DNA of 64,000 bases from Malacoraja senta (GCA_038087875.1 JAXLNO010001219.1:1-64000); one strand, 5' to 3'; positions 1,775-62,636 are shown, numbered from the stretch's first letter. Notes: generated by a model from the letters alone, not told the origin. Translations and numbers: made by a program.

Positions 1775-2095
1775 AACCCATGTCTGCTCCTGTGCTCAGT
1801 TATCTGTCAGCAGCAAATGCCTCACGTCTTGGAGGCTCAGTGTCAGTGTCCTGTGAGTCTCTCCGTGGATCCCTTCCCATCCATTACACATGGTTTGAGA
1901 AGAACGAGCATTGGGTTTCAACGATCTTGCAAGGCAATCAACTGGATCTGAGTTGTGAAATCCTCAGAGGTGAACACCTTCGATATTACTGCACAGCCGC
2001 AAATAATCGTGCGACAAAATCCAGTGAAATAGTCAAGGTGAAAGTCTTCAAAGGAGCAGGAACGTGCAGTTATGTGACAGAAATGAACAATGCAG
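1775..2095 (+). CDS. Gene A exon: C2-type Ig domain (C2a), FcR-like/PECAM-like
   Basis: Acceptor cccacag|AA, donor GCAG|gtgagt, 321 nt, phase 1-1. Encodes EPMSAPVL...[16 protein letters not shown]...YYCTAAN. Confidence 0.9.
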
Positions 2096-3343
2096 GTGAG
2101 TGTTCCTCTCGTGTCCCTGAACCTGCTGCTATTCACCTTGTGGTGATGTTCATGTATTTCTTGTTATTTGCAGACGGCATCATTGCAGCCACCGTGAGCT
2201 CATGGTGTAAAATGCGAGAGTTTGTTTGGGGGACTGGCAAATAATTGCCCGTAGCTTCCACCATGGAGGTGTTGAGCAATTTCAGCAAAGGAGAGAAAGA
2301 CATGCACTTGTCATAAAGCGTTGAGTGCACTCCATCAAATTTCTGCCTTCTGCCTTAAAAATGCCGCTTGGCTGCCGCTTAAGGTCTCACAGTCACTTTG
2401 AGACATTGAAAGCAACCAAATGCATTCTGTTTGGATCCGCCATCATTTACAATCAAGGATGTACAATTTCATGATCATGTTCATGATTTTAACTGTTAAT
2501 TTGTGTTAAACTCCAGTAATATCACTAAATTAAATTGTAATCTACTTGGCCGTCACTCCATCAAGTATAACCCTTACTTTTGTCAAAGAGAATTTTGAAA
2601 TGAACTCCCAGTAGGTGTGGAGACGTTCAGATTGGAAGTCCAGAATAGAGTGTGAATGGTTTACATCAGAGACACCAAGCTTATACAATGCCAGCGTTTC
2701 TTAAACTATTTCAGTGCCATTCACCCTTGAGTCTTTATTACAAGATTTAATTCACCCTCCACTAAATATTCTTATGTTTTTTTGGTTATTATCATCTTAT
2801 TTTCACTTGTGCATAATTTTATATATAATTTATTTTGTCACATGAGCAAAAAACATGAATTAACTCATTCACCCCAAAATAATTTCATTCGCCCTTGGGT
2901 AAACCATTCATCAGTTTAAGAAGCACTGGCCGAGGCTACAATTTCGCCGAACACTTGTGTTTGGTCTGTCATGACCCAGAGTCGTACTTGATAGACACCC
3001 CGTTGATGTAGAGCAGCAGCAGTTTGCACCATCTGCACGATGCACTGCAGCAACTCACCAAGACTCCCAAGACATTACCTTCCAATTGCAACAGGCTCCG
3101 TGTTCAATGCATCATTCTTCACCATTCACACCCACATTAGCTGGGAAGCGCTTTGGAACGACGTGCAGATGGTGAGGGACGGTGTACAGTATCTGTCTCA
3201 TCGCAATCTAGGTGGAATTCAACAGAGTTAAGAAAATCATTGGGCGGACGCCCCTGTATACATTGATGTATACTATAATGTATATGTTTGTGAAAGGCTA
3301 ATTTTGCTCTTCAATCTATGAAAGAATTTTCCTTCAGTTTCAG

Positions 3344-3655
3344 GTGCACTGTGGGCAGAGAGCGAAGTACGAGGGGTTGTGGGAAGAGCGATCTCAATCG
3401 ATTGTCACTATGCAGCAGTGTACCGCTCACACACAAAATACTGGTGCCCTGGGACAAGTCGCCAGTGTACACATATAGTGGAAACAAATGGGAAACAAGG
3501 ACAGAGCGGAAGAGTGTCAATCACAGATAACCCGGCACGAGGAATATTTACTGTGACTGTGGAGGATCTTCACTCTGGAGATACAGGATGGTACAGATGT
3601 GGAATTATTACACCTGGCGAACCAACATTTAAAGTACATCTCCAAGTATCTGAAG
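3344..3655 (+). CDS. Gene A exon: CD300/pIgR-like V-type Ig domain (V4)
   Basis: Acceptor tttcag|GT, donor GAAG|gtaggt, 312 nt, phase 1-1. Motifs IDCHY, KYWC-x6-[24 protein letters not shown]. Confidence 0.93.
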
Positions 3656-4229
3656 GTAGGTTTCTCAGTGAGTGACTTCATGTCTCGACTTTGGCATCTG
3701 CATAAAACATTTGTTGGGTCACATATGGGAGCCTGGTGCACAGTTCTGGTCCCCGCTTTATAAAACAAAAGATGTGAAAGGTTTGGAGAGGTTACAGAAA
3801 AATGTCACCGGGATATTTAGTTGGAGGTTACAAATGCAACATGGAAACGGATCCTTCGGCCCACCGAGTCCACACCGACTAGCGATCACCGGTCGCACTA
3901 GTTCTATGTTATTCTACTTTCCCATTCGCTCCCTACACATAATTCTACAATACCGCCATTCTCACACCTCATTAGTGCAACATTATCACTATCAACAAGT
4001 TTATACAAGGAAATTTGAGAGTTGTTGATATTGATACTGTTGCACTAATGAAGTGTTTGAATGTTGGTATTGTAGAATTGTGGCAGAGTTTCAGATTAAA
4101 AGAAGATTAACTGCAGATGCTGGAAATATAAAACAAAGACAGATGGTGCTGCTGTGTATTGGTACAGTGGCAGACATGGTAGTTCTGCCAGCTGGGTGGA
4201 TGGAGAGACACAGAGATGTTCAAATCTGT

Positions 4230-4715
4230 TAAGTTGTGAGGAGAAGGTACAGGGAAGACTTACAAGGATGTTGCGATGACTTGACACTCAGGGAGGGATT
4301 GAGCAGATTAGGACTTTATTTCTTGGAGCGCAGGAGGATGAGGGATGATCTTATGGCAGGTAAAAAATCATGCGAGGAATAGATCGAGTTAATACACAGC
4401 CTTTTGCTCAGAGTAGGGGAATCGAGAACCGGAGGACATGGTTTTAATATGAGGGGGGAATGATTTAACAGGAACCTGGTGAGTCACGTTTTTACACAAA
4501 GGTTGGTAGGCACATGAAACGAACTGCCGACAGAAGTAGTTATGGCAGGTACTATCGTAACATTTAATAAAATATTGGACATGTACATGAATATGATATG
4601 TTTAGTGGGTTAAGGGCCAAGAAAGGGCAGGTGGAACTCGTGTAGATTGGGCGTGTTGGTCTGCGCGGGCAAGTTAGACCGAAGGGCCTGTTTCTACGCT
4701 GTATGACTCTATGAT
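4230..4715 (+). mobile_element. Degenerate CR1 LINE 3' fragment
   Basis: Decayed match to the 3' end of the CR1 ORF2 and UTR seen at 18650-19140. Paralogous copy at about 32860-33345. Confidence 0.65.
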
Positions 4716-4844
4716 TCTATGTAGATGGATGGGTCCGATTCCAAAATGGCGGCTCTGGCTAAGATACAGAGATGGTGGATATTGGCGAGTGTTTGATTTT
4801 CAGATGTTCACTCAGTTGTCTGACTGTTTGCTCCTTTCCCACAG

Positions 4845-5165
4845 ACCCCGTGTCTGTTCCTGTGCTTGGATTTCTGTCACCAGCCAATGTCTCCTGTGTC
4901 GGGGGCTCAATGACAGTGTCCTGTGAGTCGGTCAGTGGATCACCGCCCATTAGCTACAGCTGGTATGAAAAGACCCCATCTGTGGATTCAAAGATCTCAG
5001 ACCAAAATGCCCTGGATCTGCATTGTCAATCATTCAAACACCAGCACCATCAATATTATTGCACAGCCTCCAATAATAATGGAACAAAATCCAGTGAAAT
5101 GGTCAACGTGTCCATCTCCAACAGTGACGTGCCCTGCAGTTTTCTAGTGAAAATCAACGGCACTG
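4845..5165 (+). CDS. Gene A exon: C2-type Ig domain (C2b)
   Basis: Acceptor tcccacag|AC, donor ACTG|gtaagt, 321 nt, phase 1-1. Encodes DPVSVPVL...[16 protein letters not shown]...YYCTASN. Confidence 0.9.
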
Positions 5166-5931
5166 GTAAGTAGTGGGGGGGAATGAGGAGAAGAAGGGGA
5201 AGTGCGGGTGGGGGGTTCATCAGATTACAAGTGATAGAAGCAGAAATAGACCATTCAATCATGGCTGATCTATCTTCCCTTCTTCACCCCATTCTCCTGC
5301 TTTCTCCTCATAACCTCCGTCACCCTGAAATCCCTGCACGTTATTTAAGTAATTTATCAAGATTAATATGATGGAATTATGGCTCATTTGTCAGTACTTG
5401 GTTGTTGGGCTCCAGAAATAGAATTCGTAGTGCTGGTGTAGGCTAGCATCCTGTATAGAATTGCCTCTTGCATTTACACAGCTTTGAACTAGGTTTGCAG
5501 TGACATCAGTCCAAGCACATTCACTTTCCCACCACATGATCCACACACAGATATGGTAAGGGATCAGACATTATCAGTAAATGTGGCCACAGTTAAATCC
5601 TTGACGACGGTATCCCATTTACCAGCACCTCGTCCATTGCAGCAATTCAGGTACCTCCACCTTCTGGGTTTAAAAATATTTCTTGATACCCTTGAAACAT
5701 CCTGCTCCTTAACTTAACCATGTGTTCTCCATATTTACACATATCTATCGTGCAACATTTCCCAAAAATCCACTGTCTATGCAGCTCAGAGTTTTTGTGC
5801 ACCTGTAATTGGTTTCCCCTTCCTCACCTGTCCTGCATGGAATATTATAAAAACCTTATCGAACCCCTCCCCATAACTGCAATGTTTCATCCCAAGCAAC
5901 ACTTCTCTCAAGTCTCAAGTCAAATTGCAAC

Positions 5932-6260
5932 CTTTAGATTAGTTTATGGATACAGCGTGGAAACAGGCTCTTCGACCCACTCGGTGCACACCGTCCAGTC
6001 TTCACCAGTACACTAGTTCCATGGGGACCATTTACAAAGCCAATGAACCGGCAAACTTGCACTACTTTGTAATGCGGGGGGGGGGGAGGGGGGGAGGGGG
6101 GGAGGGGGGGAGGGGGGAGGGGGGAGGGGGGGACAGGAGCACTTGGAGAAAACCCACACGGTCACAGGGAGGTGGTAAAAATTCCGTACATCCGTAGTCA
6201 GGATCGAACCCGGGTCTCTGGCGTTGTAAGGCAGCAACTCTACCGCTGCGCCACTGTGCC
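5932..6260 (-). mobile_element. tRNA-derived SINE
   Basis: The minus strand starts gtggcgcagcggtagagttgctgccttac...ggttcgatcc (A and B boxes), like the other SINE copies in the window. Confidence 0.75.
6076..6132 (+). repeat. G-rich tract, (G6-8 A)n
   Basis: Directly visible runs of G separated by single A residues, inside the SINE. Confidence 0.9.
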
Positions 6261-6452
6261 GTCTACATCTGGCGCCAGAGTTGTTACCAGCACGCCTGCT
6301 TGTCGTAACATCTCCCATTTAATCAACTCACACTGAAGAAACATTATCCTGTCTGTTAAGCCTATCAACTACTTACATCGGAAAACCATACTCCTTTGTT
6401 CAACTGCAAGTGAAAAGCAGTGAAACTGACTTTTATTTCCTTGTTCCAACAG

Positions 6453-6501
6453 GTCATGAATATTCTTGTGAAAATTCGATAACATCCAATAACTCTGCAA
6501 G
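6453..6501 (+). CDS. Gene A exon: 49-nt stalk exon (GHEYSCENSITSNNSA)
   Basis: Acceptor ttccaacag|GT, donor AAG|gtaaac, phase 1-2. Paralogous exon of the same length and phase at 35101-35149. Confidence 0.8.
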
Positions 6502-8833
6502 GTAAACCACTCTGTTTCCAATGGAAGTTACAATATAGTAATTGCTGGTGTTTTGGTTGGGAATGCTTTATTTGGGAGAAATTTGTGCCTGCCTTTCACT
6601 GGCATTAAATGCCCTGAGAGTATTGATCTGAATGCACAGTGGCACAGCCGATAGAATCACAGCCTCACAACGCCACGACCCTGGTTCATTAGGTGCTGTC
6701 TGTGCGTGGTCTGCATGTTTTGCCTTGTATTGTGTTGGTTTAATTTAAGTGCTCCAGTTTCCTCCCAGCTCCCAAAGATGTGCCAGTTGTAAATTGCCCC
6801 GTGTGTACAGGACAGCGGTTGAATCTGTGCATAGGGGATGGGGCGGGGAGGGAGGGAGGGTGTTGGACGGTAGTGGTAGTTGATCAGAAAGTGGGGAAAA
6901 TAAAAATGGGATTGACAGAGGATCCGTGTGAATGTAGTTGACTGTCGGCACAGACCAGAAGGGCCAAATGGCCTGTTTCTATACTGTGTTTCTCCATGGG
7001 TCTTTGATCCAATGAAACCAAATATCGAAGCATAATCAAATTTTGTACGTCCAGCCATGATCACATTGAATGGCGGTGCTGGCTCAAAGGGCCGAATGGC
7101 CTACCCCTGCACCTCTTGTCTATTGTCTATTGTCTATTGTTTCAAGCCTGACACCAAATATAAATGTATCTCTTAAATATTCGTTAATAATATGTATTTA
7201 ACTTGCAAACCAATTATTAGTTAACTCTTCAGAAGGGGGATTACACTGGGTTTACATCTCATTGTGTTGTGTACATGCTTGGATGATAAGAACAAGTTCC
7301 TCCATTTGCTGCTTTTCAGAGAGCGCTTCCTGCAGTATTCACCATGACTTCTCCATCACTAACCTCATCCCATGCTGTGAGATGAATATAGTTGCCAAAC
7401 CCAAGTCTTGCAGTTTAGCTTGGTTGAGACTTGCTCTGGTGTGGTGCTGATAGGTAAATGCATTATGAATTATGGGCTAAGACACCCCACTTGATATCAC
7501 TTGTGGCAACACCTTGCCATTGATGGGGGTCACGCACCAACAATTCGCTGGCGCAGAATGTGAGAAAAGTCTTGAATCAGACCGAATACAGCGAACTGAG
7601 TTAACTCAATCAATCAATCAATCAATCAACCGTTATCGTCATCTTAAACATTTCACACATAAATAAAAACAATAAAAACACTGAAAAAATAAAAAAATAA
7701 AAATAAAAATAAAAAAAAATGAAACAATCCAGTCCCTGATAAAAACAATACGAATAGTTAAAAAGTGCAGGTAAAAAAACAGCAACATTAAAATACAAGT
7801 AAAAACAGTCATAAATAACTGACGCTCCCTTACACATTGAACCTTGAAAACATTGTTTTTTAAATTATCCCTGAATATTCCATCATAATACAGTCATGAA
7901 AGTGGGAACACTTTGTTATTTATCTTGTTACAATTGAAATAGATCTTGCTTTCTATCCCACTCAAGTGTTATGCTTGCGTTAGGAAATAAGAATATTAAT
8001 AAAAGGCACGTCGTTATGAGCGAACCTTTAATCGATTTTTCGAACACACACATACACACACCTACCGCGTTAATCCAAGTAATATCCAGGGGGTGAGATT
8101 AAGCATTATCATTTTTAATTTATTTTATTACTTGGCCTCATCTGTTTCCATATTTATTGTCCCACCTCCCTTCCAACATTAGAATGGATCCCTTTTAATT
8201 ATTCCTCTCTATCCATATGGATTTTATTATAATCTCCTTGCAGCTGCATATTCTTTCTTCCAGGGTATTACACTGTTCTTTGTATCTTTCACACATCCAC
8301 ATTTTCCCTTTCCCGTGACTCCCAGTCTGAAGAAGGGTCTCGACCCGAAACGTCACACATGGGGTCAGGCAGCAAAGATTCGGTGGCGCAGAAAGTGAGA
8401 AAACAGCCTTGAATCAGACCGAATACAGCGAACTGTGTTAATTGATGCTCCCTTACACATTGAACCTTGGAACCTCTCCCGCTGTGTTTCTCCAGCATTG
8501 CGTGTCTATCTACTCTGTAGTCACTGAATTCACTGCTCCATCTAATGACTTATTTCTCTGTCTTCTCCGAATCCATTTAACCGTGTAATCTCTGATACCC
8601 AGTCTTGTAGATATGCTCCAGCAAAGAGGTCAGTAATTGGTGATCATAGGTTGTCCCCCCACCCCCCACCCCCAGTCCAACACCCGTTCTTTCTCCAAGA
8701 TGATCTCCATTGGCTCTGCTGCTTCGCCCCGCTCCACTTCACCAAGATTATGAAGCAAATAACAGGTAAATGTTTCAAAGATAAACCGTCTCGTTTCCTC
8801 CCAGTGATTCTGTATCTCTTGCCCTTTGCCTAG

Positions 8834-8924
8834 TTACATCGCATGGAATGTGGGGCGCTGGTTGTTCTTTCTCCTGCTTGTGATCTGGAGTATCTCAACC
8901 GCGGTGTTCACAAGAGGCTCTAAG
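8834..8924 (+). CDS. Gene A exon: transmembrane segment with Arg (SYIAWNVGRWLFFLLLVIWSISTAVFTRGSK), activating type
   Basis: Acceptor ctttgcctag|T in phase 2, matching the stalk exon; donor AAG|gtaggt in phase 0. Hydrophobic stretch of about 25 aa; CGC (Arg) at 8856-8858. Confidence 0.75.
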
Positions 8925-9316
8925 GTAGGTTCTATTACCATCATGTTCATAAATTATAGGAGCAGAATTGGTCCATTCAACCCATTATACATAATCCGCC
9001 CCCAATCACGACTAATCTAGCCTTCGCTCCCGATCCATCCTCCTGCCTTCTCCGCATATCCCTTGACATCCTTATTTATGAAGAATATGAAAATCTCCGG
9101 CTTAAAAATATCAATTGATTTGGATAGGTACAAAAATACTGGAGTAACTCAGCGGGACAGGCAGCATCTCCGGAGTGAATTGATTTGGCCTCCACAGCCT
9201 CCTATGGTAATGTAATCCATTGATTCACCACCCTCTGCGCAAAACAATCCATTCTCTTCGCCGAATGTATCCAAACGGTTTCCATTAATGCTTTCAAATA
9301 TCCTGTCCATTGATAG

Positions 9317-9343
9317 AAACAAAAATCGTGCGCGTTTTCATAA
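9317..9343 (+). CDS. Gene A putative terminal coding exon (KQKSCAFS*), short tail with no Tyr motif
   Basis: Acceptor ccattgatag|AAA in phase 0 fits the TM donor. Downstream AATAAA at 9965 and 9982. The acceptor is weak, so the call is tentative. Confidence 0.45.
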   Translation, partial: KQKSCAFS

Positions 9344-9964
9344 CCTGAAGTTAAACCAAATCACTATGTAGATGATATCATGTGGTTTTGTCAGGTTGTA
9401 CGTGTGCTGGGTGGATTTCTGTGCGCGGTGTGGATTCGTTGGGGTCCATCCTCCAGACAGCCATGTGTTGGGGGTGGTCGGGTCAAATAAAGCGTGGTTC
9501 CCACTGTCAGTGAGTCTAATGACTTCATATTGTCTTTTGGAGAGACGCGATGAATCAGAACCTCGCCACTCGACACACGAATTACAATGAAGACTCCTAG
9601 CTTGCACCAACAGTGAGGGAATTCTGCACCGCGATGAAATATTTATGCATCATCCTGCTTTGTCAACTGATACCAATTGGACAGAATATATGTCTCTTGC
9701 AATTCAACGAATGGTTTCATGAAAGTAATGTTCCAAACTTTCCAAACCATATCTGTTTCTAAAACTCATTTACCGCACTGGTCTTAATGTTTGTCACCTC
9801 TTCCAAGGTTTCTTTCATCACCTTCGAACCATTGTTTTAACCTCTGCGTGGTTTGTGCTGCTCCAACGTCTTATACTCTGTTAAAATATATTATATGCAT
9901 TCAACTTCCTGGAAAAAAAATGTTTTCGCTGATAAATGAATAATTATGCATCAGGATGCTTCTT

Positions 9965-9987
9965 AATAAATTTTTGTTGTCAATAAA
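9965..9987 (+). terminator. Candidate polyadenylation signals of gene A
   Basis: AATAAA at 9965-9970 and 9982-9987, followed by a T/GT-rich stretch. Confidence 0.4.
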
Positions 9988-10352
9988 TGGTTTGTCTAAT
10001 TTGTTTTGTTTAGACTGTAACTTTAGTGTTGACGAACAGACTGAAATCAGACTGCTGGAGATTCCTCCTGTTGCCAAACGTTAAATGCGTTAAGGAATGG
10101 CAATGATTAATCTTTCAGACCATGCTATCCCATCAGAACAAAACTCCAGATGCTGGTTTAAACTGAAGAGAGACATAGATTCCTGGAGTAACTCAGAGTG
10201 ACAGGCGGCATCTGTGGATATATCGGGTAGGCTTAGGCGCACTCAGCGGCGGTGTTCAACGAATTGATCGCCGATCCTGCGCTTGTACTCGCTTGTAGGC
10301 GATCGTTTCGCTGAACAGCTCCGCTCAATCCGCCTAAACCTACCTGACATCC

Positions 10353-11636
10353 CGGTCAATAGACAATAGACAATAGACAATAGGTGCAGGAGTAGGCCAT
10401 TTGGCCCTTCGAGCCAGCACCGCCATTCAATGTGATCATGGCTGATCATCCCAAATCAGATCAGATCAGATCAGATCAGATCAGATCAGATTCAGATCAG
10501 ATTCAACGTTATTGTCATTGTGCAGTGTACAGTACAGAGACAACGAAATGCAGTTAGCATCTCCCTAGAAGAGCGACATAAATATGAGCAATAAATAAAT
10601 CTAATAAATCCTGGTGGGAGGAGTGTCGGGGGGGTTGATTGGCAGTCACCGAGGTACAGTGTTGAGTAATGTAACAGCAGCAGGGAAGAAGCTGTTCCTG
10701 GACCTGCTGGTCCGACAACGGAGAGACCTGTAGCTCCTCCCGGATGGTAGGAGGGTAAACAGTCTGTGGTTGGGGTGAGAGCAGTCCTTGGCGATGCTGA
10801 ACGCCCTTCGCAGACAACGCTTGCTTTGGACAGACTCAATGGAGGGGAGTGAGGAACCGACGATGCGTTGGGCAATTTTCACCACCCTCTGCAGTGCTTT
10901 CCGGTCGGAGACAGAGCAGTTGCCATACCATACTGTGATGCAGTTGGTAAGGATGCTCTCGATGGTGCAGCGGTAGAAGTTCACCAGAATCTGAGGAGAT
11001 AGATGGACCTTCTTTAGTTTCCTCAGGAAGAAGAGACGCTGGTGAGCCTTCTTGACCAGAGTTGAGGTATTGTGGGCCCAAGAGAGGTCATCGGAGATGT
11101 TGCCCCCCAGGAACCTTAAGCTGGAAACACGTTCCACCTCCGTCCCGTTAATGTGGATGGGGGGTGTGCGTGCCGCCCCTAGACGTCCTGAAGTCTACAA
11201 CGAGCTCCTTGGTCTTCTTGGAGTTAAGGGCCAGGTTGTTGTCAGCGCACCATGCTGCTAGGAGCTGGACCTCCTCCCTATAGGCCGACTCATCGTTGTT
11301 GCTGATGAGGCCAATCACCGTTGTATCATCTGCATACCTGATGATGGTGTTAGTACCATGTACAGGTGTGCAGTCGTAGGTGAAGAGGTGAAATCAGTAC
11401 CCCGTTCCAGCCTTCTCCCCATATCCCCTGACTCCGCAATTTTTAAAAGCCCTATCTATCTCTCTCTTGAAGGCATCCAGAGCACCTGCCTCCACCGCCC
11501 TCTGAGGCATAGAATTCCACAGACTCACCACTCTCTGTGAGAAAAAGTGTTTCCTCGTCTCCGTTCTAAATGGCTTACTCCTTATTCTTAAACTATGGAT
11601 CCTGGTTCTGAACTCCCCGAACATCGGGAACACGTT
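10353..11636 (-). mobile_element. CR1 LINE 3' fragment, split by the Rex1 insertion
   Basis: (AATAGAC)n tail and CR1 3'UTR at 10353-10452. Minus-strand ORF 11394-11633 reads MFPMFGEFRTRIHSLRI...[13 protein letters not shown], the CR1 ORF2 C-terminus. Confidence 0.8.
10453..11397 (-). mobile_element. Rex1/Babar-type non-LTR retrotransposon 3' fragment
   Basis: ORF 10646-11137 (FLG..ISDDLSW...KAHQRLFFLRKLK...FYRCTIESILT..ITVWYG...NSFFPAAV). (ATCAG)n tail at 10455-10502. Flanked by the direct repeat aaatcag at 10453 and 11391. Confidence 0.8.
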
Positions 11637-12332
11637 TCGCTAAACACTTTAACTCCCCCTCCCACTCCCACACTGACATTTCTATCCTGGGCATTCTCCA
11701 TTGTCAGAGTGAGTCCCAGCGCAAATAGGATGAACAGCACCTCATATTTCGCTAGGGCAGCTTACACCCCAGCGGTGTGAACATTGACTTCTCTAACTTC
11801 AAGTAACCCTTGCTTTCCCTCTCAATCCAGCCCCCCACTTACCAGCTCTCCGATCAGTCTGACAGTCTCCGACTACATTTTACCACTAATTGCTTTGTTG
11901 TTACCTTCTCCCAGCTAACAATGATCTATTCTACATTTTCCTTGAGCTTCACCCCCTTTGTCCCGTTTTCACACCTTACAATTCCTAATCTAATTATTTC
12001 CACCTCCCTTGACTTCAGTCTGAATAAGGGTCTCGACCCGAAACGTCACCCATTCCTTTCATCCATAGATGCTACCTGTCCCAATGAGATACTCCAGCAT
12101 GTTGTACAACAATATTTTTTTGATTAAATGATTGAAAGAAACAGCATCGATACTGACCATTTGGCCCACCGAGCCCACGTCAACCAGCAATCAACCCTTT
12201 CACACTGGTTCTATATCACCCCACGTTCGCGTCTTTTGAGTACAGTAATGTTGATAAACATGTTATTGCTGCAACGAGTTATTCATTTTGTCCACCGTAC
12301 AAAAGAGTTAATGGACTATAAATAATGGCCAA

Positions 12333-12646
12333 GGTGGCGCAACGGTAGAGTTGCTGCCTTACAACGCTTGCAGTGCGGGAGACCCAGGTTCGATCCCGAC
12401 TACGGGAGCTGTGTGTACGGAGTTTGTACGCTCTACCGTGCCCGCGTGATTTTTCTCCCAGATCTTCGATTTCCTCCCACACTACAAAGACGTACAGGTA
12501 TGTAGGTTAATTGGCTTGCTATAAATGTAAATTGTCCACAGTGTGTGTGGGATAGCGTTATTGTGCGGGGATCGCTGGTCAGTGTGGCCTCGGTGAGCCG
12601 AAGGGCCTGTTTCCGCGCTGTATCTCCAAACTAAACTAAACTAAAC
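12333..12646 (+). mobile_element. tRNA-derived SINE with (AAACT)n tail
   Basis: Head ggtggcgcaacggtagagttgctgcc...ggttcgatccc, tail ctgtatctccaaactaaactaaac. Paralog at about 56417-56625. Confidence 0.8.
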
Positions 12647-15928: not shown

Positions 15929-16015
15929 AATGGTTGGGGGGAGGGACTCAAATAGAGAATGCTATTAGACAGTGTGTGAGGCAGGAGGCAGAGAAGGAAA
16001 GCACTCAGACCCAAC

Positions 16016-19000: not shown

Positions 19001-19040
19001 GATCAGGGGGTATGGAGAGAAGGCAGGTACGGGATACTGA
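16016..19040 (+). pseudogene. CR1 ORF2 (AP endonuclease plus reverse transcriptase), one frameshift
   Basis: Motifs [36 protein letters not shown] 5-nt deletion near 17705 relative to the copy at 42-45 kb splits the ORF. Confidence 0.92.
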
Positions 19041-50470: not shown

Positions 50471-52854
50471 ATCGCTGGGACCATCCCCGACGACTGCGTA
50501 AGCAGCTGTTATCTGGCCGGGACCTCGAGGTGGTAAAAAGTGTACTATCGGATCCATTGAGTCTGAACTCCCGAACGAGTTCTCGGGAAACCGTGGTCCC
50601 TCGTCTGAGGTTGATCTGGTTCCCTGCCGAGATTCACAAGAGTCAGAGGTAAGAGAAACATCGTTATAATAGTCAAAAGGTGGGTTAATTGAACATTCAA
50701 ACTGAGAAGAGTGGGGTCTGTGTAAATTAAGATAATAATTGAACATTCCCATCGTAATTCCTTGCAAAGGTCAGCCTAAGCACACCACAACCCATTCTCT
50801 CTGGGCCAAAATATTGTGGGTTCAAGTCCGTAAAGGGGCAATAGATCAAGCAAGAACATGGGTTCAAGTGGATTGTGGTCTAAAGCAGATATGCCCAAGA
50901 TGTAAAATAATCCTCAAGCCTGGGTAAGGGGCCTCACTGAAACTTGGTCAAGACTGGATTTTACCTGCCTCAGTGACCAGTTGCAAATAAACTGATCTTA
51001 AGTGAGCCCATCCCTAGATACGACCTAGCAGAGGGGAAATGGGGAGGGATGTGAGTAATTTAGCGTGGAACTGCAGAAATATTCATAGATTTTCTAATTT
51101 GTTAGAATGCAAGAAGTGCGACAAGAGTGTTTTATTGTCATAGAGTATGTACTTGCAGCTGCACAATAGAGCAATATACATGAATTCCTTTATCTTTTGT
51201 ACTAACTGAGAATGCAAGGTGGAGGAAGGGGAGGAAGGCAATGTAGATGTGGTTGTGTAAAAGGCAATGAATGCTTTGTATCTGAGGGCATCTGCCCCAG
51301 GACATGTGTAACTAAAGTTGGCCAATGTGTAATAAAAATAATTTGTTCTGAAAATAAGCCCCCGAGTCCACGTGAAATGTTCCCGTCTACAACGTCCTTC
51401 CCCAGTAAATGAGCACACGACGTACGAGCACTTCAGTGCCAACTGTAGAGTACATCATTGCCTGAACTGCAAACTTCTGAGTGAGATTCGAAACCAAGAA
51501 GATTCAACTGTCATGACCACAGAACCTCCAACCCCTCTCCAAAAAAAGGCAATTTCTGTAGCAGAAGAAAGTTCGATTGGAAATTCCGGTCTTAGCAGCA
51601 TTGCTAAAGGACCTCTTCTCAACTCTGGAGGTACTCTGTTCGAAATATACAAAGTTCTTACAGAGCAGGAGAGTGCAGGGATGAGGCCTATCTTTGCTCA
51701 ATTATCCAGACGCAGTGAGGAGGGGTAAGTTGGGCCAAATGGCCTGTTTCTGCGTTGTATGACTCAATGACTCCAATACAATCTAGCCTGGGAACAATTG
51801 TTTCTTTGATATTAAGGGATCTATGGAAATAGAACTAGTACTGGAAACTGACATGATAAAGGATAAGCTACGATTTTAATGCATGGTGTAGTTATGAAGG
51901 ACCGAATGGGGCCTGATATACTTGTTCATTAAATTGTTCACCCAACAATACACATTTATTTGTTTTGAACACATTTCCAGTCAATGTACAAACACATCAA
52001 AGGCCAACGTGCGATGGAAAGAAATATTGGGTTCTGAGCCAAATGTGTGAGCTGCATCTTGCTGTGGTCAACGTGCTTCCTGTTAATATGAGCAGTTGAG
52101 CAAAACACAAAAAAACACTACAGTGGTTCAAGCAGCATATGTGAAAGGAGATGGGCAAGTGACATTTCAAGTCAGGACCCTACTTCAGACTGGTGTTACT
52201 TTTCTCAGAATATGATTGCAGCAGAAACCCACAAACAAACAATGGTCATAGGTTCATAAGTCCTAAGTGCAGAATTAGGCCTTTCGGCCCATCAAGTCTA
52301 CTCCGCCATTCAATCATGGCTGATCTATCTTCCCCTCTCAACTCCATTCACCTGCCTTCTCCCCATAACCCCTGACTCCCACACTAATCAGGTATCTGTC
52401 AATCTCTGCCTAAAAAATATCCATCGAATTGGCTTCCACAGTTGACTGTTGAAAAAATTCCACAAATTCACCAACCTCTGACTAAAGAAATTTGGCCCAT
52501 ATCTCTCTAAACCTATCCTGTCCAGCTTCCCTCAGGTTCCTATTAAATCTTTCCCCAACCTTAAACCTATGACCACTGCTTCTCAAATTATGTCCTCTGG
52601 TTCTCAAGTATTCAGCAATAACATGTAGAGTATAACAATGTTATCTTAGGGAGAGCACATTGCCCTGGCAGGTCAGTGGGTGGAACACAGTGGCACAGCC
52701 GGTAGAGTCGCTGCCTTGCAGCGCCTGAGACCCAGGTTCGATGCTGACTTCGGGTGCTGTCTGTATGGAGTTTGTACGTTCTCCTTGTGTACACATGTTT
52801 CTCGGGGTGCTCCGGTTTCCTCCCACACTCCAAAGACATATAGGTTTGTAGGTT

Positions 52855-54240: not shown

Positions 54241-54815
54241 TTTCATGTGCACTGTGGGCAGAGAGCGCAGAAAGAGGGGTTGTAGGTAAAGCGATCACAA
54301 TCGTATGTCACTATGCAGCAGCGTACCACTCACACACAAAATACTGGTGCCGTGGGACAAGTCGCCAACGTACACATGTGGTGGAAACAAATGGCAAACA
54401 TGGACAGAGCGGAAGAGTGTCAATCACAGATAACCCGGCACGAGGAACATTTACTGTGACTGTGGAGGATCTTCGCTCTGGAGATACAGGATGGTACAAA
54501 TGTGGAATTATTACATCTGGCGAACCAACATTTAAAGTACACAACAAAAACCGTGCAGGTTTTCATATCCTGAAGTTAAACCAAATCTCGATGTATATGA
54601 TATCACGAGGTATTGTCAGGTTGTACGTGTGCAGAATGGATTTCTGTGCCCGGTGTGGATTCATAGGGGTCCATCTTCCAGACAGCAATGTGTTGGGGGT
54701 GGTCGGGTCAAATAAAGCGTGGTTCCCACTGTCAATGAGTCTGATGACTTCACATTGTCTTTTGCAGAGACGCGATGAGTCAGAAGCTGGCCACTCGACC
54801 CACGAATTACAATGA
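54241..54815 (+). pseudogene. V4-like exon relic fused by deletion to the gene-A-type 3' end
   Basis: Normal acceptor changed from tttcag to tttcat at 54246; C' Cys replaced by Arg (CGT). The V exon stops about 16 nt short at about 54541 and continues in sequence homologous to 9317 onward. No leader, C2b or TM exon was found. Confidence 0.78.
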
Positions 54816-57800
54816 AGACACCTAGCTTGCACCAACAGTGAGGGAATTCTGCACCGCGATGAAATATTTATGCATCATCCTGCTTTGTCAACTGATATCA
54901 ATTCGACGGAATATACGTCTCTTGCAATTCAACTAATGAATTCATGAAAGTGACTTCAAAGCAATGTTCCAAAGTTTCCAAACCATATATGTTTCCAAAA
55001 CGCATTTCCGGCAATGATCTGATTGTTTGTCACCTCTTCCAAGGTTTCTTTCGTCACCTTCGAACTGTTGTTTTAACCTTTGCATGTTTTCCGTTGCTCC
55101 AACGTCTTATACTCTGTTAAACTATATTATATGCATTCAACTTCCTGGAAAAAAATGTTTTCGCTGATTATTGAATAATAATGCATCATAATGCTTCTTA
55201 ATAAATTGTTATTGTCGATAAATTGTTTGTCTGATTTGTTTTGTATATACTGCAACTTCAGTGATGAAGAACAGACTGCAATCAGACTGCTGCATATTCC
55301 TTCGGTTGCCAAACGTTAAAGGCGTTTAGGAAAGGCAATCAATTAATCTTTCAGACCATGCTATTCTATCAGAACAAAATTATGCAACGACATTGTTTTG
55401 ACTATTAGCCTTATTTTTTATCTCCACAGATGTTGACTGACGCGCTAAGCACATCTAGCATCTGCACATTTAATTTCCGATATGCAACTAATTTTTAGGT
55501 TGGAAGGAACTCCAGATGCTGTTTTGAACTGAAGATAGACATAAATTGCTGGGGTAACTCAGCGTGATAGGCAGCATCTGTGGATCGATCAGGTAGGTTT
55601 AGGCGGACTGAGCGGCGGTGAGACGATCGCCGAGCCTGCGCTTGTTCTCGCTTCTCGGCGATCGTTTCGCTGAACACCGCCGCTCAGTCCGCCTAAATCT
55701 ACCTGATATCCCGGTCGCTAAACACTTTAACACCCCCCTCCCATTCACACACTGACATTTCAATCCTCGGCATCCTCCATTGTCATAGTGAGTCCCAGCG
55801 TAAATTGGAGGAACAGCACCTCATATTTCGCTTGGGCAGCTTCCACCCCAGCCGTGTGAACAATTACTTCGCTAACTTCAAGTAACCCTTGCTTTCCCTC
55901 TCAATCCACCCGCCCCCCCTCCCCCACCTTCCCAGTACTCCGATCAGTCTGACAGTCCCCGATTATATTTTATCTCTAATTGCGTTGTTGTCACCTTCTC
56001 CCAGCTAACAATAATCTATTCTACATTTTCCTTGATCCACATCACCTTTGGCTTCACGCCTTACAGTTCCTTATCCAAGTATCTCCCTCTCCCCTGACTT
56101 CAGTCTGAAGAAGGGTCTCGACCCGAAACGTCACCCATTCCTTTCATTCATAGATGCTGCCTGTCCCGCTGAGTTACTCCAGCATGTTGTACAACAATAT
56201 TTTTTGATTAAGTGATTGAATGATACAGCATGGATACAGACCATTTGGCCCACCGAGTCCACGTAAACCAGCAATCAACCCTTTCACACTAATTCTATAT
56301 CACCCCACTTTCGCGTCTTTTGAGTACAGTAATATTGATATACATTTTAATGCTGCAACGAGTTATTCATTTTGTCTACCGTACAAATGAGTTAAAGGAC
56401 AAAAATAAAGGCCACGATGGCGCAACGGTAGAGTTGCTGCCGCACAGCGCTTGCATCGCCGGAGACCCGGGTTGGACGTGTACGGAGTTTGTACGTTCTC
56501 CCCGTGATCGCATGGGTTTTCTTCGAGATCTTCCGCCTCCTCCCACACTCCAAAGACGTACAGGTATGTATGTTAATTGGCTTGCTATTAATGAAAATTG
56601 TCCCCAGTGTGTATGCGGTCAGTGTGGACTCGCTGCTGACACTTTGCTCGCGCTGCTGCAACAAGGGTGTGTAGATTCGTATCTCTGAACCGCATCTTGC
56701 GAGCAACTCGTTGTAACACTGTTTGCTGAACAGTGTTTGCAGAAGTCATGGGTCAATGGCGAATGAAGACAGAATTAAATTGTTTGGTGCATCGTCGGTT
56801 CCTCTTTGCAGTATGTTTAGTTGGGCAAGTAAACATGAAATAGCTCCTAACAAAAGATCCTTTACAGAGGGCCGTCAACGCTCATCTAACATCAGTGGCG
56901 GACACATCAATGTGTTACACCGATGCCACGTGATACACAACATTGACACTGATGTACACAACCCGAATAAACTGCACTCTTCCCCTGAAAGTAACACACC
57001 CAGAACGATAGCCCGCTGCAGATATTAGGTTATATTATAATGCAACTATTTGCCTACAGATTGAAATGAATCGATGCAAGCAGATGTAAAAAGTCAGCAA
57101 CTGACATATACATGAACAGAACACTGATAATATATGAGCTCTGTATTGCAATGAAGACAATTAACAATTCTATTCAACGTGCATATTTTACCTTGCTTTA
57201 ACTTCACTAAGTGTATCACTTCGCCCTTGTTTGAGTTACATTACACATGTCAGTTACATTCCACATCCCGCTTTCCCACCTGATCTCCATCCTGTGGTAA
57301 TTCTAGACAAACTTATTCACAGTCCACTACACCATTAATTGTCATTTTCAAAACGTGAATAGCATGACAATAGTGTTTCAAAGTTTGAATTAAAGAGTTG
57401 AAGCAGAGAGGAGAAGGTCAAATTCCAATTAACCTCAGCTGATTTCAGGTGAAAAGCCCCTACTTCCTCACGCCAGCTTCCTGTTTTGCCCCTTGTCCCC
57501 AGTAATATGCCACAACAAAAGTTCCAATTATTATATTTTTAATCTGCCGGTCCACTTACAAAATCAACGAGAGGAAATGATCCGAAGTTTACACATCTTA
57601 GACGTTTCTACTCTTCTAAATGTCATATTTTATCCAATGTATCATTGTTTACAAGAAGGGTCCCGACCCGAAACATCACCTATCGATTTTCTCCAGAGAT
57701 GCTGCCTGGCCCGCAGAGTTCCTCCTGCATTTTTTTTGTCTAGCATTATTTCCACCACTGTTCAGTGTTAACAGACTCTGAGTACAGAGATAATCACAGC

Positions 57801-57870
57801 TCCATCCTTACGGATACATCACACTTGACGAAGTGGTTGAAGCAGCAGCAATAACAACATCTAACGAGCA
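54541..57870 (+). repeat. Segmental duplication of 9317-14520 (gene A 3' end and intergenic spacer)
   Basis: Collinear sequence lacking the CR1/Rex1 nest, an internal segment of about 0.7 kb, and the full-length CR1. Confidence 0.85.
55503..56190 (+). mobile_element. Penelope-like fragment (uninterrupted paralog of 10145-12110)
   Basis: GIY-YIG C-terminal sequence, with a perfect ctgaagaagggtctcgacccgaaacgtc motif at 56105-56132. Confidence 0.75.
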
Positions 57871-58208
57871 TTGGACAGGTCCATGTAAGGGGAAGGTTTG
57901 GGGAGTTTCGGGTTTAAATGTGGGAAAATCTAACTAACTTAGATATGCACATTGGTCTAACGCGTTGGGGAGAAGGGCCTGTTTCCGTGACGTATGACTC
58001 TGTGATCATCTGACCCAACCATTTGTTAAATATAACCCTGATCCTTTCACACTGTAACGTGTGGAGCTGCTGCTGGCTCGCTGTGGTTCAGGATCTGAAG
58101 TCCTGTTCCCTTCTTCGTCATTGCTATTTGAGAGATGCGGTTGTATCTGAGAGCTACGAGCTGAGCGACAGACAGACAAGTGCTGGCCTCGTCACTGTGG
58201 ATAAAACA

Positions 58209-58245
58209 ATGTGGATTCCCATTCTTCTCATCTCCTCGCTGCCGG
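58209..58245 (+). CDS. Gene C leader exon ([12 protein letters not shown])
   Basis: Same coding sequence and donor (CCGG|gtgagt) as 19480-19516. Confidence 0.85.
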
Positions 58246-59819
58246 GTGAGTGAAAGCCAGATCCGGATATTCCAATGATCAATGTTATTTGGGGTCTCAT
58301 GCACCCTTTCCACAGCAGAGATAGTTAAGTATGTGTAGACATGTAATGGGGGAGATGCAACTCAGTGCATTGTGGTGATGGATCTGAAATCACATTTGAA
58401 TATCTAGACTATGTTCGTAGTTTAACCACTGTTGACACGGTCTAATTGCATCCTGGTGATAGTTTATAGGCATAAAATAGCAAATGAATTTGGAGCAGAT
58501 ACTCCAAGATACCTGGACCGAAGGACAGAGGTTACAACATCACCAGGAAGTTAATTCTACACCTTTTAAATGTGTTTACAACTGAGGGGGGGGGGTGGTC
58601 GGGATTGTGGACTCATTGTATCAGTTCAAATATTCCCTGCATTTGTCCAACTCAACTCTGTCGCAAACCCAACAATTCCCCGCAGTCTGAGACTGAACCA
58701 CTGTTCTCGCTCTATCCACCCACCCCCAACTCTCTCTCCATCCTCTTTCCAATCCGCAACCCAGTCGCGCTAAAATGCAAGTTCAGGTTATTGTCACGTG
58801 TACCGAGGTACAGTGAAAAGCTTTTTGTTGCGTGCTAATCAGACAGATACATGATTATAATCGATCCTCTTACAGTGCATAGATACATGAAAGGGAAATA
58901 AAGTGTAAGGTAAAGCCAGCGAAGTCCGATCAAGGGTATTCCGAGGGTCACCAAAGAGGTAGATAGTTCAGCACTGCTCTCTGGTTGTGGTAGGATGATA
59001 CTGATGTGTGAGTGCAACTGGAAAGGAACTGTCCCCGAATCTGGCGGTGTGCGTTTTCACGCTAGTAACGCTCTCCGGTAATATACCCGCATTATTGTAA
59101 CTCGTCCGTCCTCAGTGTCCTCAGTCAGGGCTTTATAAAGGCAGTGGCGGCGGTGAATGTCTAAACACGGGTCCGGCCCAGTGTCGGTTGAGAGATAAAT
59201 GTTTCCGGGACATCTGGGCACCGCCTGGGGTTGAATACATCCTTGACAAGTATTGTAACATAGTTGTATAGTTGTTTATTTCGTTTATTTGTTTGTCTTG
59301 TATTATGGTGGTGGGTTCTGTTTTGTTTTATTGTATCGTCAATATTATTTTCAATAATTAAATAAATTATTTGATAATATTTTTTTTTTAAACACGTGTC
59401 CGGCCCAGTGTCGGTTGAGAGATGAATGTTGGCAGCGCAGCCGGCGGCACCGCCAATTAAATAGCAAAGTGGGGTCTTTCTTTAGGGTGAGAGGCCGGGC
59501 ACCGCCTGGGATTGTTGGAAGGCAGCTCCTGCAACACTGCCGCGCTCCCTCAGAACCGCACTGCGATCCCAGCCCAGTTTCTGCTCAGGGATCTGGAGTG
59601 GGAAGTGAACCCAAATTGTACTGAGCCGCGGACAGAACATTGACACAACTGGTACAATAACAGCACTGTCTGCACTTCAGACCGGAGACATTGGTCGTGA
59701 AGCAATATGACACATTATGGAACGTTTTACGTTTTCTTTCATGTAATCTTCAAAATGTATCAATTACCATTAAACAGTTAATTTGCTCTCCATCTGAAAG
59801 TTTCTCCGCTCAGTTTCAG

Positions 59820-60134
59820 GTGCAGTGTGGGCAGAGTGGGAAGTAAAAGGAGTTGTGGGAAGAGAGATCACAATCGATTGTCACTATGCAGCAGAGTACC
59901 GCTCACACACAAAATACTGGTGCCGTGGGAGGAGTCGATCGTGTAGAGTTTTAGTGGAAACAAATGGGCAACACGGACGGAGTGGAAGAGTGTCAATCAC
60001 AGATAACCCGGCACGAGGAATATTTATTGTGACTGTGGAGGATCTTCACTCGGAAGATACAGGATGGTACAGCTGTGGAATTTCAACATCAGCCGACCAT
60101 CCAATATTTAACGTTTTACTCGAAGTATCTGACG
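59820..60134 (+). CDS. Gene C exon V1'
   Basis: Acceptor tttcag|GT, donor GACG|gtatgt, 315 nt, phase 1-1. Confidence 0.93.
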
Positions 60135-60464
60135 GTATGTTTCGCAGCGAATGACTTGACGTCTCCAGCAGAAAGACAATACAGGATTACAATCGATCCT
60201 CTTACAGTGCATAGATACATGAAAAGGAAATTACGTTTAGTGTAAGGCGAATCCAGCAAAGTCCGATCAAGGGTAGTCCGAGGGTCATCAAAGAGATAGA
60301 TAGTTCCGCACTACTCTCTGGATGTGGTAGGATGATTCAGATGCCTGACAACAGCTGTGAAGAAATTGTCCCCGAATCTGGCGGTGTGCGTGTTCACGCT
60401 AGTAACGCTCTCCGGTAAGGGACCTGGAGGTGGGTGGTGAGTGGGCGAGTGGTGAGTGGGTGAG

Positions 60465-61320
60465 TGGTTGGGTGAGTGGGCAGATGCATGGCAGATGAAG
60501 TTTAATGTGGATAAATGTGAGTTTATCCACTTTAGTAGCAAAATCAGGAAGGCAGATTATTATCTGAATGTTGTCAGGTTGGGAAAAGGGGAAGTACAAA
60601 GAGATCTGGGGGTCCTTGTTCATCACTCACTGAAAGTAAGCATGCAGGTACAGCAGGCAGTGAAGAAAGCTAGTGGCATGTTGACCTTAATAACAAGAGG
60701 AGTTGAGTACAGGAGCAAAGAAGTCCTTCTGCAGTTGTACATGGCACCAGTGAGACCACACCTGGATTATTGTTTGCAGTTTTGATCTCCAAATTTGAGG
60801 AAGGACCTTCTTGCTATCGAGGGAGTGCAGTGTATGTTGAGGGAGTGCAACAAGGTTAATTCCCGGGATGGCGGGACTGTCATCTGTTGATTGAATGGTG
60901 CGGGTGCGCTTGTATACTCAGGAATTTAGAAGGATGAGATGGGATCTTATTGAAAAATATAAGATTATTAAGGGATTGGACACGCGAGAGGCAGGAAACT
61001 TTTTCCCGATATTAAGAATAATGGATAGGCCATTTAGAACGGAGATGAGGAAAAACGTTTTCACCCAGAGAGTTGTGAATCTGTGGAATCATCTGCCTCA
61101 GAAGGCAGTGGGGGCCGATTCACTGGATGCATTCAAAAGAGAGTTAGATAGAGCGCTTTGGGCTAGCGGAATCAAGGGGTATGGGGAAAGGCAGGAACGG
61201 GGTACTGATTGTGGATGATCAGCCATGAACACATTGAATAGCGGTGCTGGCTCGAAGGGCTGTATGGCCTACACCTGCACCTATTGCCTATGTATCTATG
61301 TATCTCTTTATCTATGTCTG
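60465..61320 (+). mobile_element. CR1 LINE 3' fragment
   Basis: ORFs 60456-60785 and 60895-61218. Paralog of 21585-22440. Confidence 0.8.
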
Positions 61321-62321
61321 TATCTACAGTTCCTTGTGTCTCCACCTCTGATATTGAAAAGCAAGACCAATCAAATATTCAGCAAGAGAACACTATACCC
61401 GTTAGAGTAACTGGGCGCAGTGGTTTCCTGCTGATTGTTATCGGGTGTTACATTTGTATTTGAAGTGAACCCTACTGATGTTAACGACTCACGAATAGAT
61501 TTAGGTTCTGTTGAGATAAGGAAATAAAAGACAATTAAAGATAGACAAAAAAATGCTGGATTAACTCAGCGAGACAGGCAGCATCGCTGGAGAGAATGAA
61601 TGGGTAACGTTTCGGGTCTGAGCATGGGTCTCGACCCGAAACGTCAGAGCGAGAGAGTTAGATGGAGCTCTAAAAGATAGCGGCGCTATGGGATATGGTG
61701 AGAAGGTAGGAACGGGGTACTGATTGTGGATAATCAGCCATGATCATAGTGAATGTCGGTGCTGGCTCGAAGGGCCGAATGGCCTACTCCTACCACTGTT
61801 GTCTCTTATCTCTTGACCAGCTTTATTGTAACCCGTCTGTCCTCCGTTCTCAGTCAGGGCTATGTAAAAGCAGTGGCGGCGGTGAATGCCTAAACACGGG
61901 TCCGGCCCAGTGTCTGTTGAGAGATGAATGTTGGCAGCGTAGCCGGCGGCACCGCCAATGAAATAGCAAAGTGAGGTATTTCTGCAGGGTGAGAGGCCGG
62001 GCACCGCCTGGGATTGTTGAAAGGCAGCTCCTGCAACACTGCCGCGCTCCCTCAGTACCGCACTGCGATCCCAGCCCAGTTTCTGTTCAGGGATCTGGAG
62101 TAGGAAGTGAACCCTAATTGTACTGACCCGGCGACAGAACACTGACACAACAGGTACAATAACAGCACTGGCTGCACTTCAGACCGGAGACATTGGCCGT
62201 GAAGCAATATGACACATCGTGGAACGATTTAAGTTTTCTTTCATGTAATCTTCAAAATGTATCTATTTCCATTAAACAGTTCATTTGCTCTCCATCTGAA
62301 AGTTTCTCCCCTCCATTTCAG

Positions 62322-62636
62322 CTGCAGTGTGGGGAGAGACGTATGTAAGAGGAGTTGTGGCAAGAGCGATCACAATCGATTGCCACTATGCAGCAGAGTA
62401 CCGCTCACACACAAAATACTGGTGCCGTGTGCAGAGTCGCCAATGTACGGATGTGGTGGACACAAATGGGCAACACGGACGGAGTGGAAGAATGTCAATC
62501 ACCGATAACCCGGCACGAGGAATATTTACTTTGACTGTGGAGGATCTTCACTCTGGAGATACAGGATGGTACAGGTGTGGAATTACTACATCTAACGGCC
62601 GTCCAATGTTAAACGTAGAACTCCAAGTATCTGACG
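62322..62636 (+). CDS. Gene C exon V2'
   Basis: Acceptor atttcag|CT, donor GACG|gtacgt, 315 nt, phase 1-1. Confidence 0.93.

Follow-up and report, generated by a model that had tools for sequence, protein, structure and literature searches.

What receptors are encoded by a run of immunoglobulin (Ig) domain exons in the skate Malacoraja senta, and do neighbouring genes in this run form pairs of activating and inhibitory receptors? The exons lie on the + strand between positions 1775 and 62636 of a stretch of 64,000 nucleotides (nt; GCA_038087875.1, JAXLNO010001219.1:1-64000), which we call the window. A preliminary description, made from the sequence alone, had proposed a paired immune-receptor locus of a cartilaginous fish and had guessed at a link with the modular-domain immune-type receptors (MDIR) of skate. 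Based on the comparisons reported here, we conclude that the locus is the Malacoraja senta copy of the known MDIR family, with MDIR5-type and MDIR3-type genes, and that its architecture is not new in general. That it forms part of an MDIR multigene cluster in skate, with the gene models as drawn below, is in our judgement very probable. The window contains, all on the + strand, the 3' two-thirds of an MDIR5-type gene (gene A), a complete MDIR3-type gene (gene B), a relic and the 5' part of a further gene (gene C). The C2a exon of gene A begins at position 1775, and the second V exon of gene C ends at position 62636.

The assignment is carried by full-length homology to named MDIR proteins, which for both gene A and gene B includes the transmembrane (TM) segment and the tail. 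When the closest full-length homologue was used in a word-indexed search, MDIR3 (P0168, 701 amino acids (aa)) and MDIR5 (P0188, 501 aa) of Rostroraja eglanteria, the clearnose skate, were retrieved, and a second search added MDIR2. The part of gene A that lies in the window is 81.9% identical to MDIR5 residues 121-501 (381 aligned positions, 2 gaps), with 90% identity in the TM exon and 81% in the last exon. Similarly, the alignment of gene B residues 119-798 with MDIR3 covers 684 positions at 77.3% identity; the value is 81.3% when counted from C2a to the C-terminus, with 87% in the TM exon and 79% in the tail. MDIR3 has the same leader, V domain, C2a, V4, C2b, stalk, uncharged TM segment and small cytoplasmic exon as gene B, and a tail in which the two proteins read ITYAVV, V(V/L)YADV and (S/T)IYASV; it differs in having two N-terminal V domains and five Ig domains, where gene B has three and six, and it was compared as a protein only. 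MDIR5 has in common with gene A the order C2a-V4-C2b, a stalk GHEYSCEN..., a TM segment ...VGRWL(L/F)FLLLVIWSISTAVFTRGSK and a tail (K/R)RDESEPRHS(A/T)HELQ; the differences are a GAG acceptor before the last exon of gene A and an N-terminus of gene A that lies outside the window. The guess at MDIR was therefore borne out, since MDIR5 and MDIR3 align end to end with genes A and B. The 798-aa product of gene B, whose search against chondrichthyan and MDIR proteins had been suggested, matched MDIR3 with TM segment and tail included. Furthermore, the clearnose-skate sequences join the same kinds of exon in the same order, which argues against the idea, considered in the preliminary description, that the exons come from unrelated genes.

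With the V4 exon as query, an exhaustive HMMER search yielded 2500 hits, headed by multi-domain skate and ray proteins, and the closest homologues of the locus all come from skates. RefSeq models of the same family were found in Leucoraja, Amblyraja, Rhinoraja, stingrays, mantas, sawfish, many sharks and Callorhinchus, mostly labelled 'polymeric immunoglobulin receptor-like', 'Fc receptor-like protein 5' or 'uncharacterized'. The ray, shark and Callorhinchus models agree with the locus in their domain types and in having C-termini of the same two kinds, at 70-93% identity per domain; they differ in that their names hide the family, several are fusions and the number of domains varies by gene. 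No protein database match to the window exceeded 93% identity and none was identical, so copies from Malacoraja senta itself seem to be absent from protein databases. The earlier suggestion that the architecture may be unannotated holds for the species' own protein, which was not found in the databases, and fails in general, as MDIR3, MDIR5 and the RefSeq models of Leucoraja, Amblyraja and Rhinoraja demonstrate.

PMC3031540 describes MDIRs as multigenic activating and inhibitory families, citing Cannon et al., Immunogenetics 2006. Two MDIR traits are present at the locus: a variable mix of V and C2 modules (six domains in gene B and at least C2a-V4-C2b in gene A), and members whose tails carry ITIMs (immunoreceptor tyrosine-based inhibitory motifs) beside members with a basic TM residue in a large multigene family (three genes and a relic in 64 kb). 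The 2006 MDIR abstract is said to give one to six Ig domains per MDIR and four subfamilies, with a charged TM residue reportedly in MDIR1 and ITIMs in MDIR2 and MDIR3.

The kinship of the individual domains was examined in searches against solved structures. V4 matched the V domains of CD300A, CD300F and CLM-6 at 68-70 bits and domain D1 of pIgR at 54.6 bits, with lower-scoring matches to NKp44, TIM, TREM2 and FCMR. C2b hit the C2 repeats of FCRL5 at 18-33 bits per repeat (summed E 4e-46), and there were hardly any other convincing matches. These results agree with the earlier reading of the domains as CD300/pIgR-like V plus FcR-like C2. A 2014 survey (PMC4016189) reported pIgR-like and FCRL-like domains to be absent in cartilaginous fish; contrary to that survey, both pIgR/CD300-like and FCRL-like domains are present there.

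Despite these similarities, the genes belong to none of the families from which their domains are best known. The V domains have in common with CD300/CMRF35 and pIgR a V-set fold with an extra disulphide, and CD300 receptors also occur as pairs of ITIM and charged-TM members. However, a CD300 receptor has a single V domain and no C2, whereas here V domains are interleaved with FCRL-like C2 domains, which places the genes outside CD300. In contrast to pIgR, which consists of V-type domains only and transports polymeric Ig across epithelia, the genes described here have C2 domains and an ITIM tail and thus fall outside that family too; the RefSeq name 'pIgR-like' reflects the V domain only. FCRL5 and other FCRLs show the same C2 pattern, PVSxPVL...CE..GSPPI.Y.WY...YYCTA.N, and also occur with ITIM tails, and no search made here found homology between FCRL tails and MDIR-type tails. 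FCRLs are not known to have CD300/pIgR-type V domains. Finally, LILR/PIR, KIR, SIRP and CD300 resemble the locus in combining near-identical ectodomains with one of two endings, an ITIM tail or a basic TM residue followed by a short tail, and in having tandem genes homogenised over their ectodomain exons, although this is an analogy of organisation and not whole-gene homology.

The window contains eight V exons of CD300/pIgR type, all on the + strand, seven of which are 312 or 315 nt long with AG/GT borders in phase 1-1. Its four C2 exons are 321 nt long, likewise AG/GT and phase 1-1, and are of two types, C2a and C2b, about 70% alike. Pfam assigned the V exons to V-set (E 1e-12 to 1e-14) and the C2 exons to Ig_3, Ig_2 or Ig_C17orf99. 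In an alignment that included the flanks, conservation of the V exons was bounded by a common acceptor TTTCAG and a common donor GA(A/C)G/GTA (splice site at the last slash). Since all Ig exons are in phase 1-1, domains could be added, lost or skipped without breaking the frame. Small exons (stalk, TM, cytoplasmic and tail) were located by tblastn of homologous skate and ray proteins onto the window, and all have AG/GT borders and compatible phases; an initial hydropathy scan for a charged TM segment missed the TM exon of gene A, which homology then located. A leader exon of 37 nt (12 aa, phase 1) occurs only twice in the window when up to three mismatches are allowed, at 19480 and 58209. It is identical to the N-terminus of MDIR5 and to MDIR3 residues 5-16, and we take its MWIPILL... 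to resemble CD300 leaders. The C2a exon was considered as the start of a separate gene and this was ruled out, as no leader lies between V3 and C2a. The exons of genes A and B are as follows.

1775 to 2095, + strand: gene A C2a, 321 nt, phase 1-1; Pfam Ig_C17orf99/Ig_3/Ig_2, 73% to MDIR5 117-225.
3344 to 3655, + strand: gene A V4, 312 nt (acceptor 3338 would add 'VS'); Pfam V-set E 1.9e-13, 84% to MDIR5 226-331.
4845 to 5165, + strand: gene A C2b, 321 nt; 86% to MDIR5 333-440, FCRL5-like.
6453 to 6501, + strand: gene A stalk, 49 nt, GHEYSCENSITSNNSA; AG/GT, matches the MDIR5 stalk GHEYSCENPITSSYSA.
8834 to 8924, + strand: gene A TM, 91 nt, SYIAWNVGRWLFFLLLVIWSISTAVFTRGSK, Arg at the outer TM end; AG/GT, 90% to MDIR5 456-486.
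9543 to 9590, + strand: gene A last exon, RRDESEPRHSTHELQ and stop, acceptor GAG; 81% to the MDIR5 C-terminus.
19480 to 19516, + strand: gene B leader, phase 1; same as the MDIR5 N-terminus.
20946 to 21260, + strand: gene B V1, 315 nt (alternative acceptor 20940); AG/GT, Pfam.
23436 to 23750, + strand: gene B V2, 315 nt; AG/GT, Pfam.
27684 to 27998, + strand: gene B V3, 315 nt; AG/GT, Pfam.
30406 to 30726, + strand: gene B C2a, 321 nt, one residue unlike gene A; AG/GT.
31975 to 32286, + strand: gene B V4, 312 nt, protein same as gene A (alternative acceptor 31969); AG/GT.
33484 to 33804, + strand: gene B C2b, 321 nt; Pfam, 83% to MDIR3 442-549.
35101 to 35149, + strand: gene B stalk, 49 nt, 16 aa; homology, AG/GT.
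41214 to 41302, + strand: gene B TM, 89 nt, 30 aa, no charge inside the helix; 87% to MDIR3 566-595.
46639 to 46685, + strand: gene B small cytoplasmic exon, 47 nt, 16 aa; homology, AG/GT.
47104 to 47379, + strand: gene B tail with ITYAVV, VLYADV and TIYASV, and stop; 79% to MDIR3 611-701.

The 11 exons of gene B join into 2397 nt encoding 798 aa with a single terminal stop. The protein comprises the leader, V1-V2-V3-C2a-V4-C2b, the stalk, an uncharged TM segment of 23 aa and a cytoplasmic part of 107 aa, in which ITYAVV (740), VLYADV (762) and TIYASV (791) form two ITIMs and one motif resembling an immunoreceptor tyrosine-based switch motif (ITSM). As sequence patterns, ITYAVV and VLYADV agree with the ITIM consensus (S/I/V/L)xYxx(I/V/L). 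All three tyrosine motifs are kept in MDIR3 and in the Amblyraja and Leucoraja models, and the Rhinoraja model P0003 keeps the second and third. Gene B thus has the sequence marks of an inhibitory receptor, one predicted to recruit SH2 phosphatases. Within the intron between its stalk and TM exons, positions 40050-40800 are GC-rich, with long overlapping Pro/Arg/Gly-rich frames on both strands and no Pfam match; this may be a CpG-island-like or low-complexity element.

The six exons of gene A in the window are all open with AG/GT borders and join into 379 aa ending ...NVGRWLFFLLLVIWSISTAVFTRGSKRRDESEPRHSTHELQ, followed by the stop. Their order is C2a-V4-C2b, stalk and then ...NVGRWLFFLLLVIWSISTAVF TRGSKRRDESEPRHSTHELQ, with a tail of 20 aa that has no tyrosine. 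The leader and the N-terminal V exon or exons of gene A must lie upstream of the window. At position 9585, in the last exon, genomic-like sequencing shows C or G (Gln or Glu).

The preliminary description had spliced these exons by hand, and every one of its exons is present on the + strand with AG/GT sites and matching phases. The 798-aa length, neutral TM segment and ITIM/ITIM/ITSM series that it gave for gene B were recovered exactly, and its count of three receptor genes and one relic on the + strand is confirmed, with genes A and C partial in the window. One refinement concerns the acceptors. Tandem acceptors 6 nt apart (CTCAG/TTTCAG/, a slash after each) occur at 3338/3344, 20940/20946, 31969/31975 and 59814/59820, while V2, V3 and the second V exon of gene C have the downstream acceptor only. 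MDIR3 and MDIR5 read 'VSG' ('...VSGALW...') at the V1 and V4 joints, which fits the upstream acceptor; therefore the true proteins may be 2-4 aa longer than modelled. Isoforms differing by 2 aa are also possible, judging from the paired sites.

How closely do genes A and B resemble each other? Their proteins are 91.5% identical over 351 aa, with a difference of one residue in C2a plus V4, which confirms the C2-V-C2-stalk ectodomain earlier said to be common to both. Highly similar ectodomains in neighbouring genes, a trait of paired receptors, are therefore found here. At the DNA level the shared segment extends from 1 to 7486 in gene A and from 28632 to 39236 in gene B, and its identity falls in steps.

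Gene A 1-3990 against gene B 28632-32621: 99.9%, 5 mismatches; covers C2a, V4 and introns.
Gene A 4000-5250 against gene B, colinear: about 95%; covers C2b.
Gene A 5250-6750 against gene B, colinear: about 80%; covers the stalk exon.

The colinear blocks continue to 7486 in gene A and 39236 in gene B, across a long interspersed nuclear element (LINE) insertion in gene B. No homology between the two genes was found in the window beyond 7486/39236, and the differing TM exons sit past this point. For C2b of gene A versus gene B, the ratio of nonsynonymous to synonymous substitution rates (dN/dS) is 0.43. Between paralogous V exons dN/dS ranges from 0.66 to 1.24, from 13-45 substitutions; we dropped the claim of diversifying selection on the V exons, as these substitutions are too few.

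The remaining features belong to the relic and to gene C, and they repeat the arrangement of genes A and B.

54247 to 54542, + strand: relic V4-type exon, the AG of its acceptor replaced by AT, lacking its 3' end and donor; flanks match 2934-3638 at 88%.
54768 to 54815, + strand: relic MDIR5-type last exon, RRDESEAGHSTHELQ and stop; 54543-55379 matches 9318-10143 at 89%.
58209 to 58245, + strand: gene C leader, the second leader copy.
59820 to 60134, + strand: gene C first V; AG/GT, Pfam.
62322 to 62636, + strand: gene C second V, after which the gene runs off the window; 59202-63836 matches 20331-24944 at 94.8%.

In the relic, the broken V4 exon is joined directly to the intron that precedes the last exon, and the C2b, stalk and TM exons between them are deleted. 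As a V4 remnant joined to an MDIR5-type last exon, the relic is by its sequence a decayed, putatively activating-type (MDIR5-type) partner of the MDIR3-type gene C. Segments 9318-10143, 11637-12546, 13318-14521, 19133-20035 and 20331-24944 recur in order at 54543-63836 with 86-95% identity. Since the unit recurs with the relic and gene C, the two-gene unit is older than its tandem duplication, and the 99.9% tract between genes A and B arose later, by conversion or copying. Positions 50841-50924 (+ strand), which lie between gene B and the relic, match the first 28 residues of the Amblyraja 'pIgR-like' model P0005 at 79% and may be the relic of an upstream or untranslated exon.

Overall the window is vertebrate DNA with interspersed LINEs and complex internal duplication. 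Two LINE copies, at 15083-19138 and 42055-45268 (+ strand), are 97.6% identical. Open reading frame (ORF) 1 encodes a GDSL-type esterase domain (15083-15823) and ORF2 an endonuclease and a reverse transcriptase; ORF2 is intact in the second copy (870 aa, 42558-45170), which lies in sense direction inside the intron between the TM and cytoplasmic exons of gene B. Older LINE fragments lie at 37182-39054, 21593-22423 and 60466-61305 on the + strand and at 23944-25286 and 62836-63986 on the - strand.

The arrangement of gene types was also seen in other skates. In Leucoraja erinacea (little skate), one strand carries the 3' end of a gene with Arg in its TM segment (Arg-TM), a 3.6 kb spacer and two complete genes with ITIM tails. 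With homologues in skates, and with similar ectodomains joined to differing signalling ends, the proposal of a paired-receptor locus in a cartilaginous fish is supported. The automatic annotation of these regions is uneven. On Leucoraja CM054030.1 (L002), 10001-43349, the RefSeq model 'pIgR-like isoform X1' (P0155, 803 aa) extends across two whole MDIR3-type genes, both of which have a leader, TM segment and ITIM tail of their own, and mixes exons from the two. In the Rhinoraja model P0025, 'TRIM69-like', an MDIR5-type C2a-V4-C2b-TM follows the N-terminus of a TRIM protein. Chimaeras are frequent among the automatic models of the MDIR family.

By analogy with paired receptors, genes A and B would present a near-identical membrane-proximal ectodomain and so could see the same ligand. 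Gene B, once phosphorylated on tyrosine, would recruit SHP-1/SHP-2/SHIP-type phosphatases and damp the cell, while the Arg of gene A would pair with an acidic residue of an adaptor carrying an ITAM (immunoreceptor tyrosine-based activation motif) and activate it. The likeness of C2a and V4 in the two genes would stem from gene conversion or from a segmental duplication of very recent date. This proposal is modelled on ITIM receptors and on the charged-TM receptors LILRA/PIR-A, NKp46, GPVI and FcalphaRI. We lean slightly towards the view that gene A is activating through adaptor coupling of its Arg. The wider reading, in which the VGRW TM module of MDIR5 type is a true adaptor-coupled activating module and the locus is a pair kept alike by gene conversion, is put forward tentatively and with some doubt. 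Of the earlier label for gene A, the Arg-TM segment and short tail were seen, whereas 'activating' stays a prediction for an Arg that sits at the outer TM edge.

Several points weigh against this explanation of the locus. The N-terminal exons of gene A fall outside the window, and its Arg is at the edge of the helix, not in mid-membrane. MDIR4 and MDIR5 were reportedly listed in the 2006 abstract as lacking characteristic signalling motifs. A search of RNA-Seq libraries for the species with the gene B tail exon listed no run. Two runs examined over 30300-36299 and 4700-10699 cover introns evenly and show no exon-exon joints, so both are genomic-like. The acceptor of the last exon of gene A (9541-9542) is GAG, where four related copies have CAG: the relic (54766-54767), Leucoraja (L002:6401-6403) and two in Rhinoraja (L001:4880-4882 and L001:26802-26804); no alternative base at this acceptor was reported in the two genomic-like runs. 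The 2014 survey (PMC4016189) found no FcR gamma chain in the shark genomes screened, and the literature on ITAM adaptors in cartilaginous fish yielded nothing usable, adaptor genes not having been sought in the genome. Lastly, two Arg-TM genes stand side by side in Rhinoraja, and strict alternation of activating and inhibitory genes as a rule was rejected on this account.

The alternative that survives best is that gene A, as an MDIR5-type receptor, is silent in signalling and serves as a decoy, co-receptor or ligand competitor of gene B, its Arg being a juxtamembrane anchor. We regard this as possible but rather unlikely. It would account for an Arg in third or fourth place at the outer end of a hydrophobic run of 17 residues, and it agrees with the reported lack of characteristic motifs in MDIR5 and with the lack of an FcR gamma chain in the sharks screened in 2014 (PMC4016189). 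However, since the hydrophobic run by itself has 17 residues, the Arg towards the outer end must be part of the helix. The Arg-TM motif (G/A/S/N-R/K-W and then a hydrophobic run, mostly VGRW) was found in 28 of the 265 fetched homologues, 23 of which are listed. Skates, stingrays, manta rays, sawfish and a sawshark retain a module in which W.VGRW is followed by the hydrophobic run, FTR..K and an acidic short tail that lacks tyrosine, which goes beyond the need of a passive anchor. Furthermore, Arg in the outer third of the helix is typical of receptors coupled to the FcR gamma chain, such as LILRA, NKp46, GPVI and FcalphaRI. The negatives of the 2014 survey are themselves weak because pIgR-like and FCRL-like domains were missed there though present.

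A second alternative holds that gene A, and perhaps others, were recently inactivated or are unexpressed, and that the locus is mostly the debris of a large family with fast turnover. The relic is clearly dead, gene A has a weakened last acceptor (GAG), LINEs have inserted within and between the genes and no RNA-Seq run was listed. Nevertheless, all six exons of gene A and all 11 of gene B are open with AG/GT sites, and the C2b dN/dS value given above stands against decay. GAG acceptors can function, and read-through would still leave a short tail behind the same TM segment of gene A. We consider this explanation improbable.

Word depth in run X2 was about 70-78 over C2a-V4-C2b (30300-33900) and about 64 in the region of gene A's stalk (4700-7500), the latter about three times the value of about 19 over an intron specific to gene B (34000-35300). 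A depth three to four times higher implies several near-identical copies in the genome and a region that is hard to assemble. Such copies, together with a tract that has only 5 mismatches in about 3990 bases and a sharp end, might suggest that 1-3990 and 28632-32621 look nearly identical through an assembly artefact and that gene A or B is chimaeric. This is highly improbable: identity steps down from 99.9 to 95 to 80%, the genes stay colinear to 7486/39236 through differing repeat insertions, as is usual for true paralogues, ectodomains and tails are combined in MDIR3 and MDIR5 as they are here, and Leucoraja has the same gene order.

The locus leaves the prior description of MDIRs unchanged. 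Its use lies in the annotation of skate genomes and in the study of paired-receptor evolution, for which it provides an exon-level genomic picture of a family otherwise met here as named proteins and inconsistently named predictions. It adds genomic detail, namely where the breakpoint lies, a homogenised tract, a two-gene unit that was duplicated and left a relic, and the conserved Arg-TM module. The locus shows one ectodomain joined to two signalling ends and allows the breakpoint to be placed at 7486/39236, and it singles out the conserved Arg-TM module and a duplicated two-gene unit in which one partner is decaying. If the VGRW module is indeed activating, an ITAM adaptor partner would be implied in a lineage in which the FcR gamma chain has been reported absent, and pIgR/CD300-type V domains and FCRL-type C2 domains would be linked in one ancestral kind of receptor.

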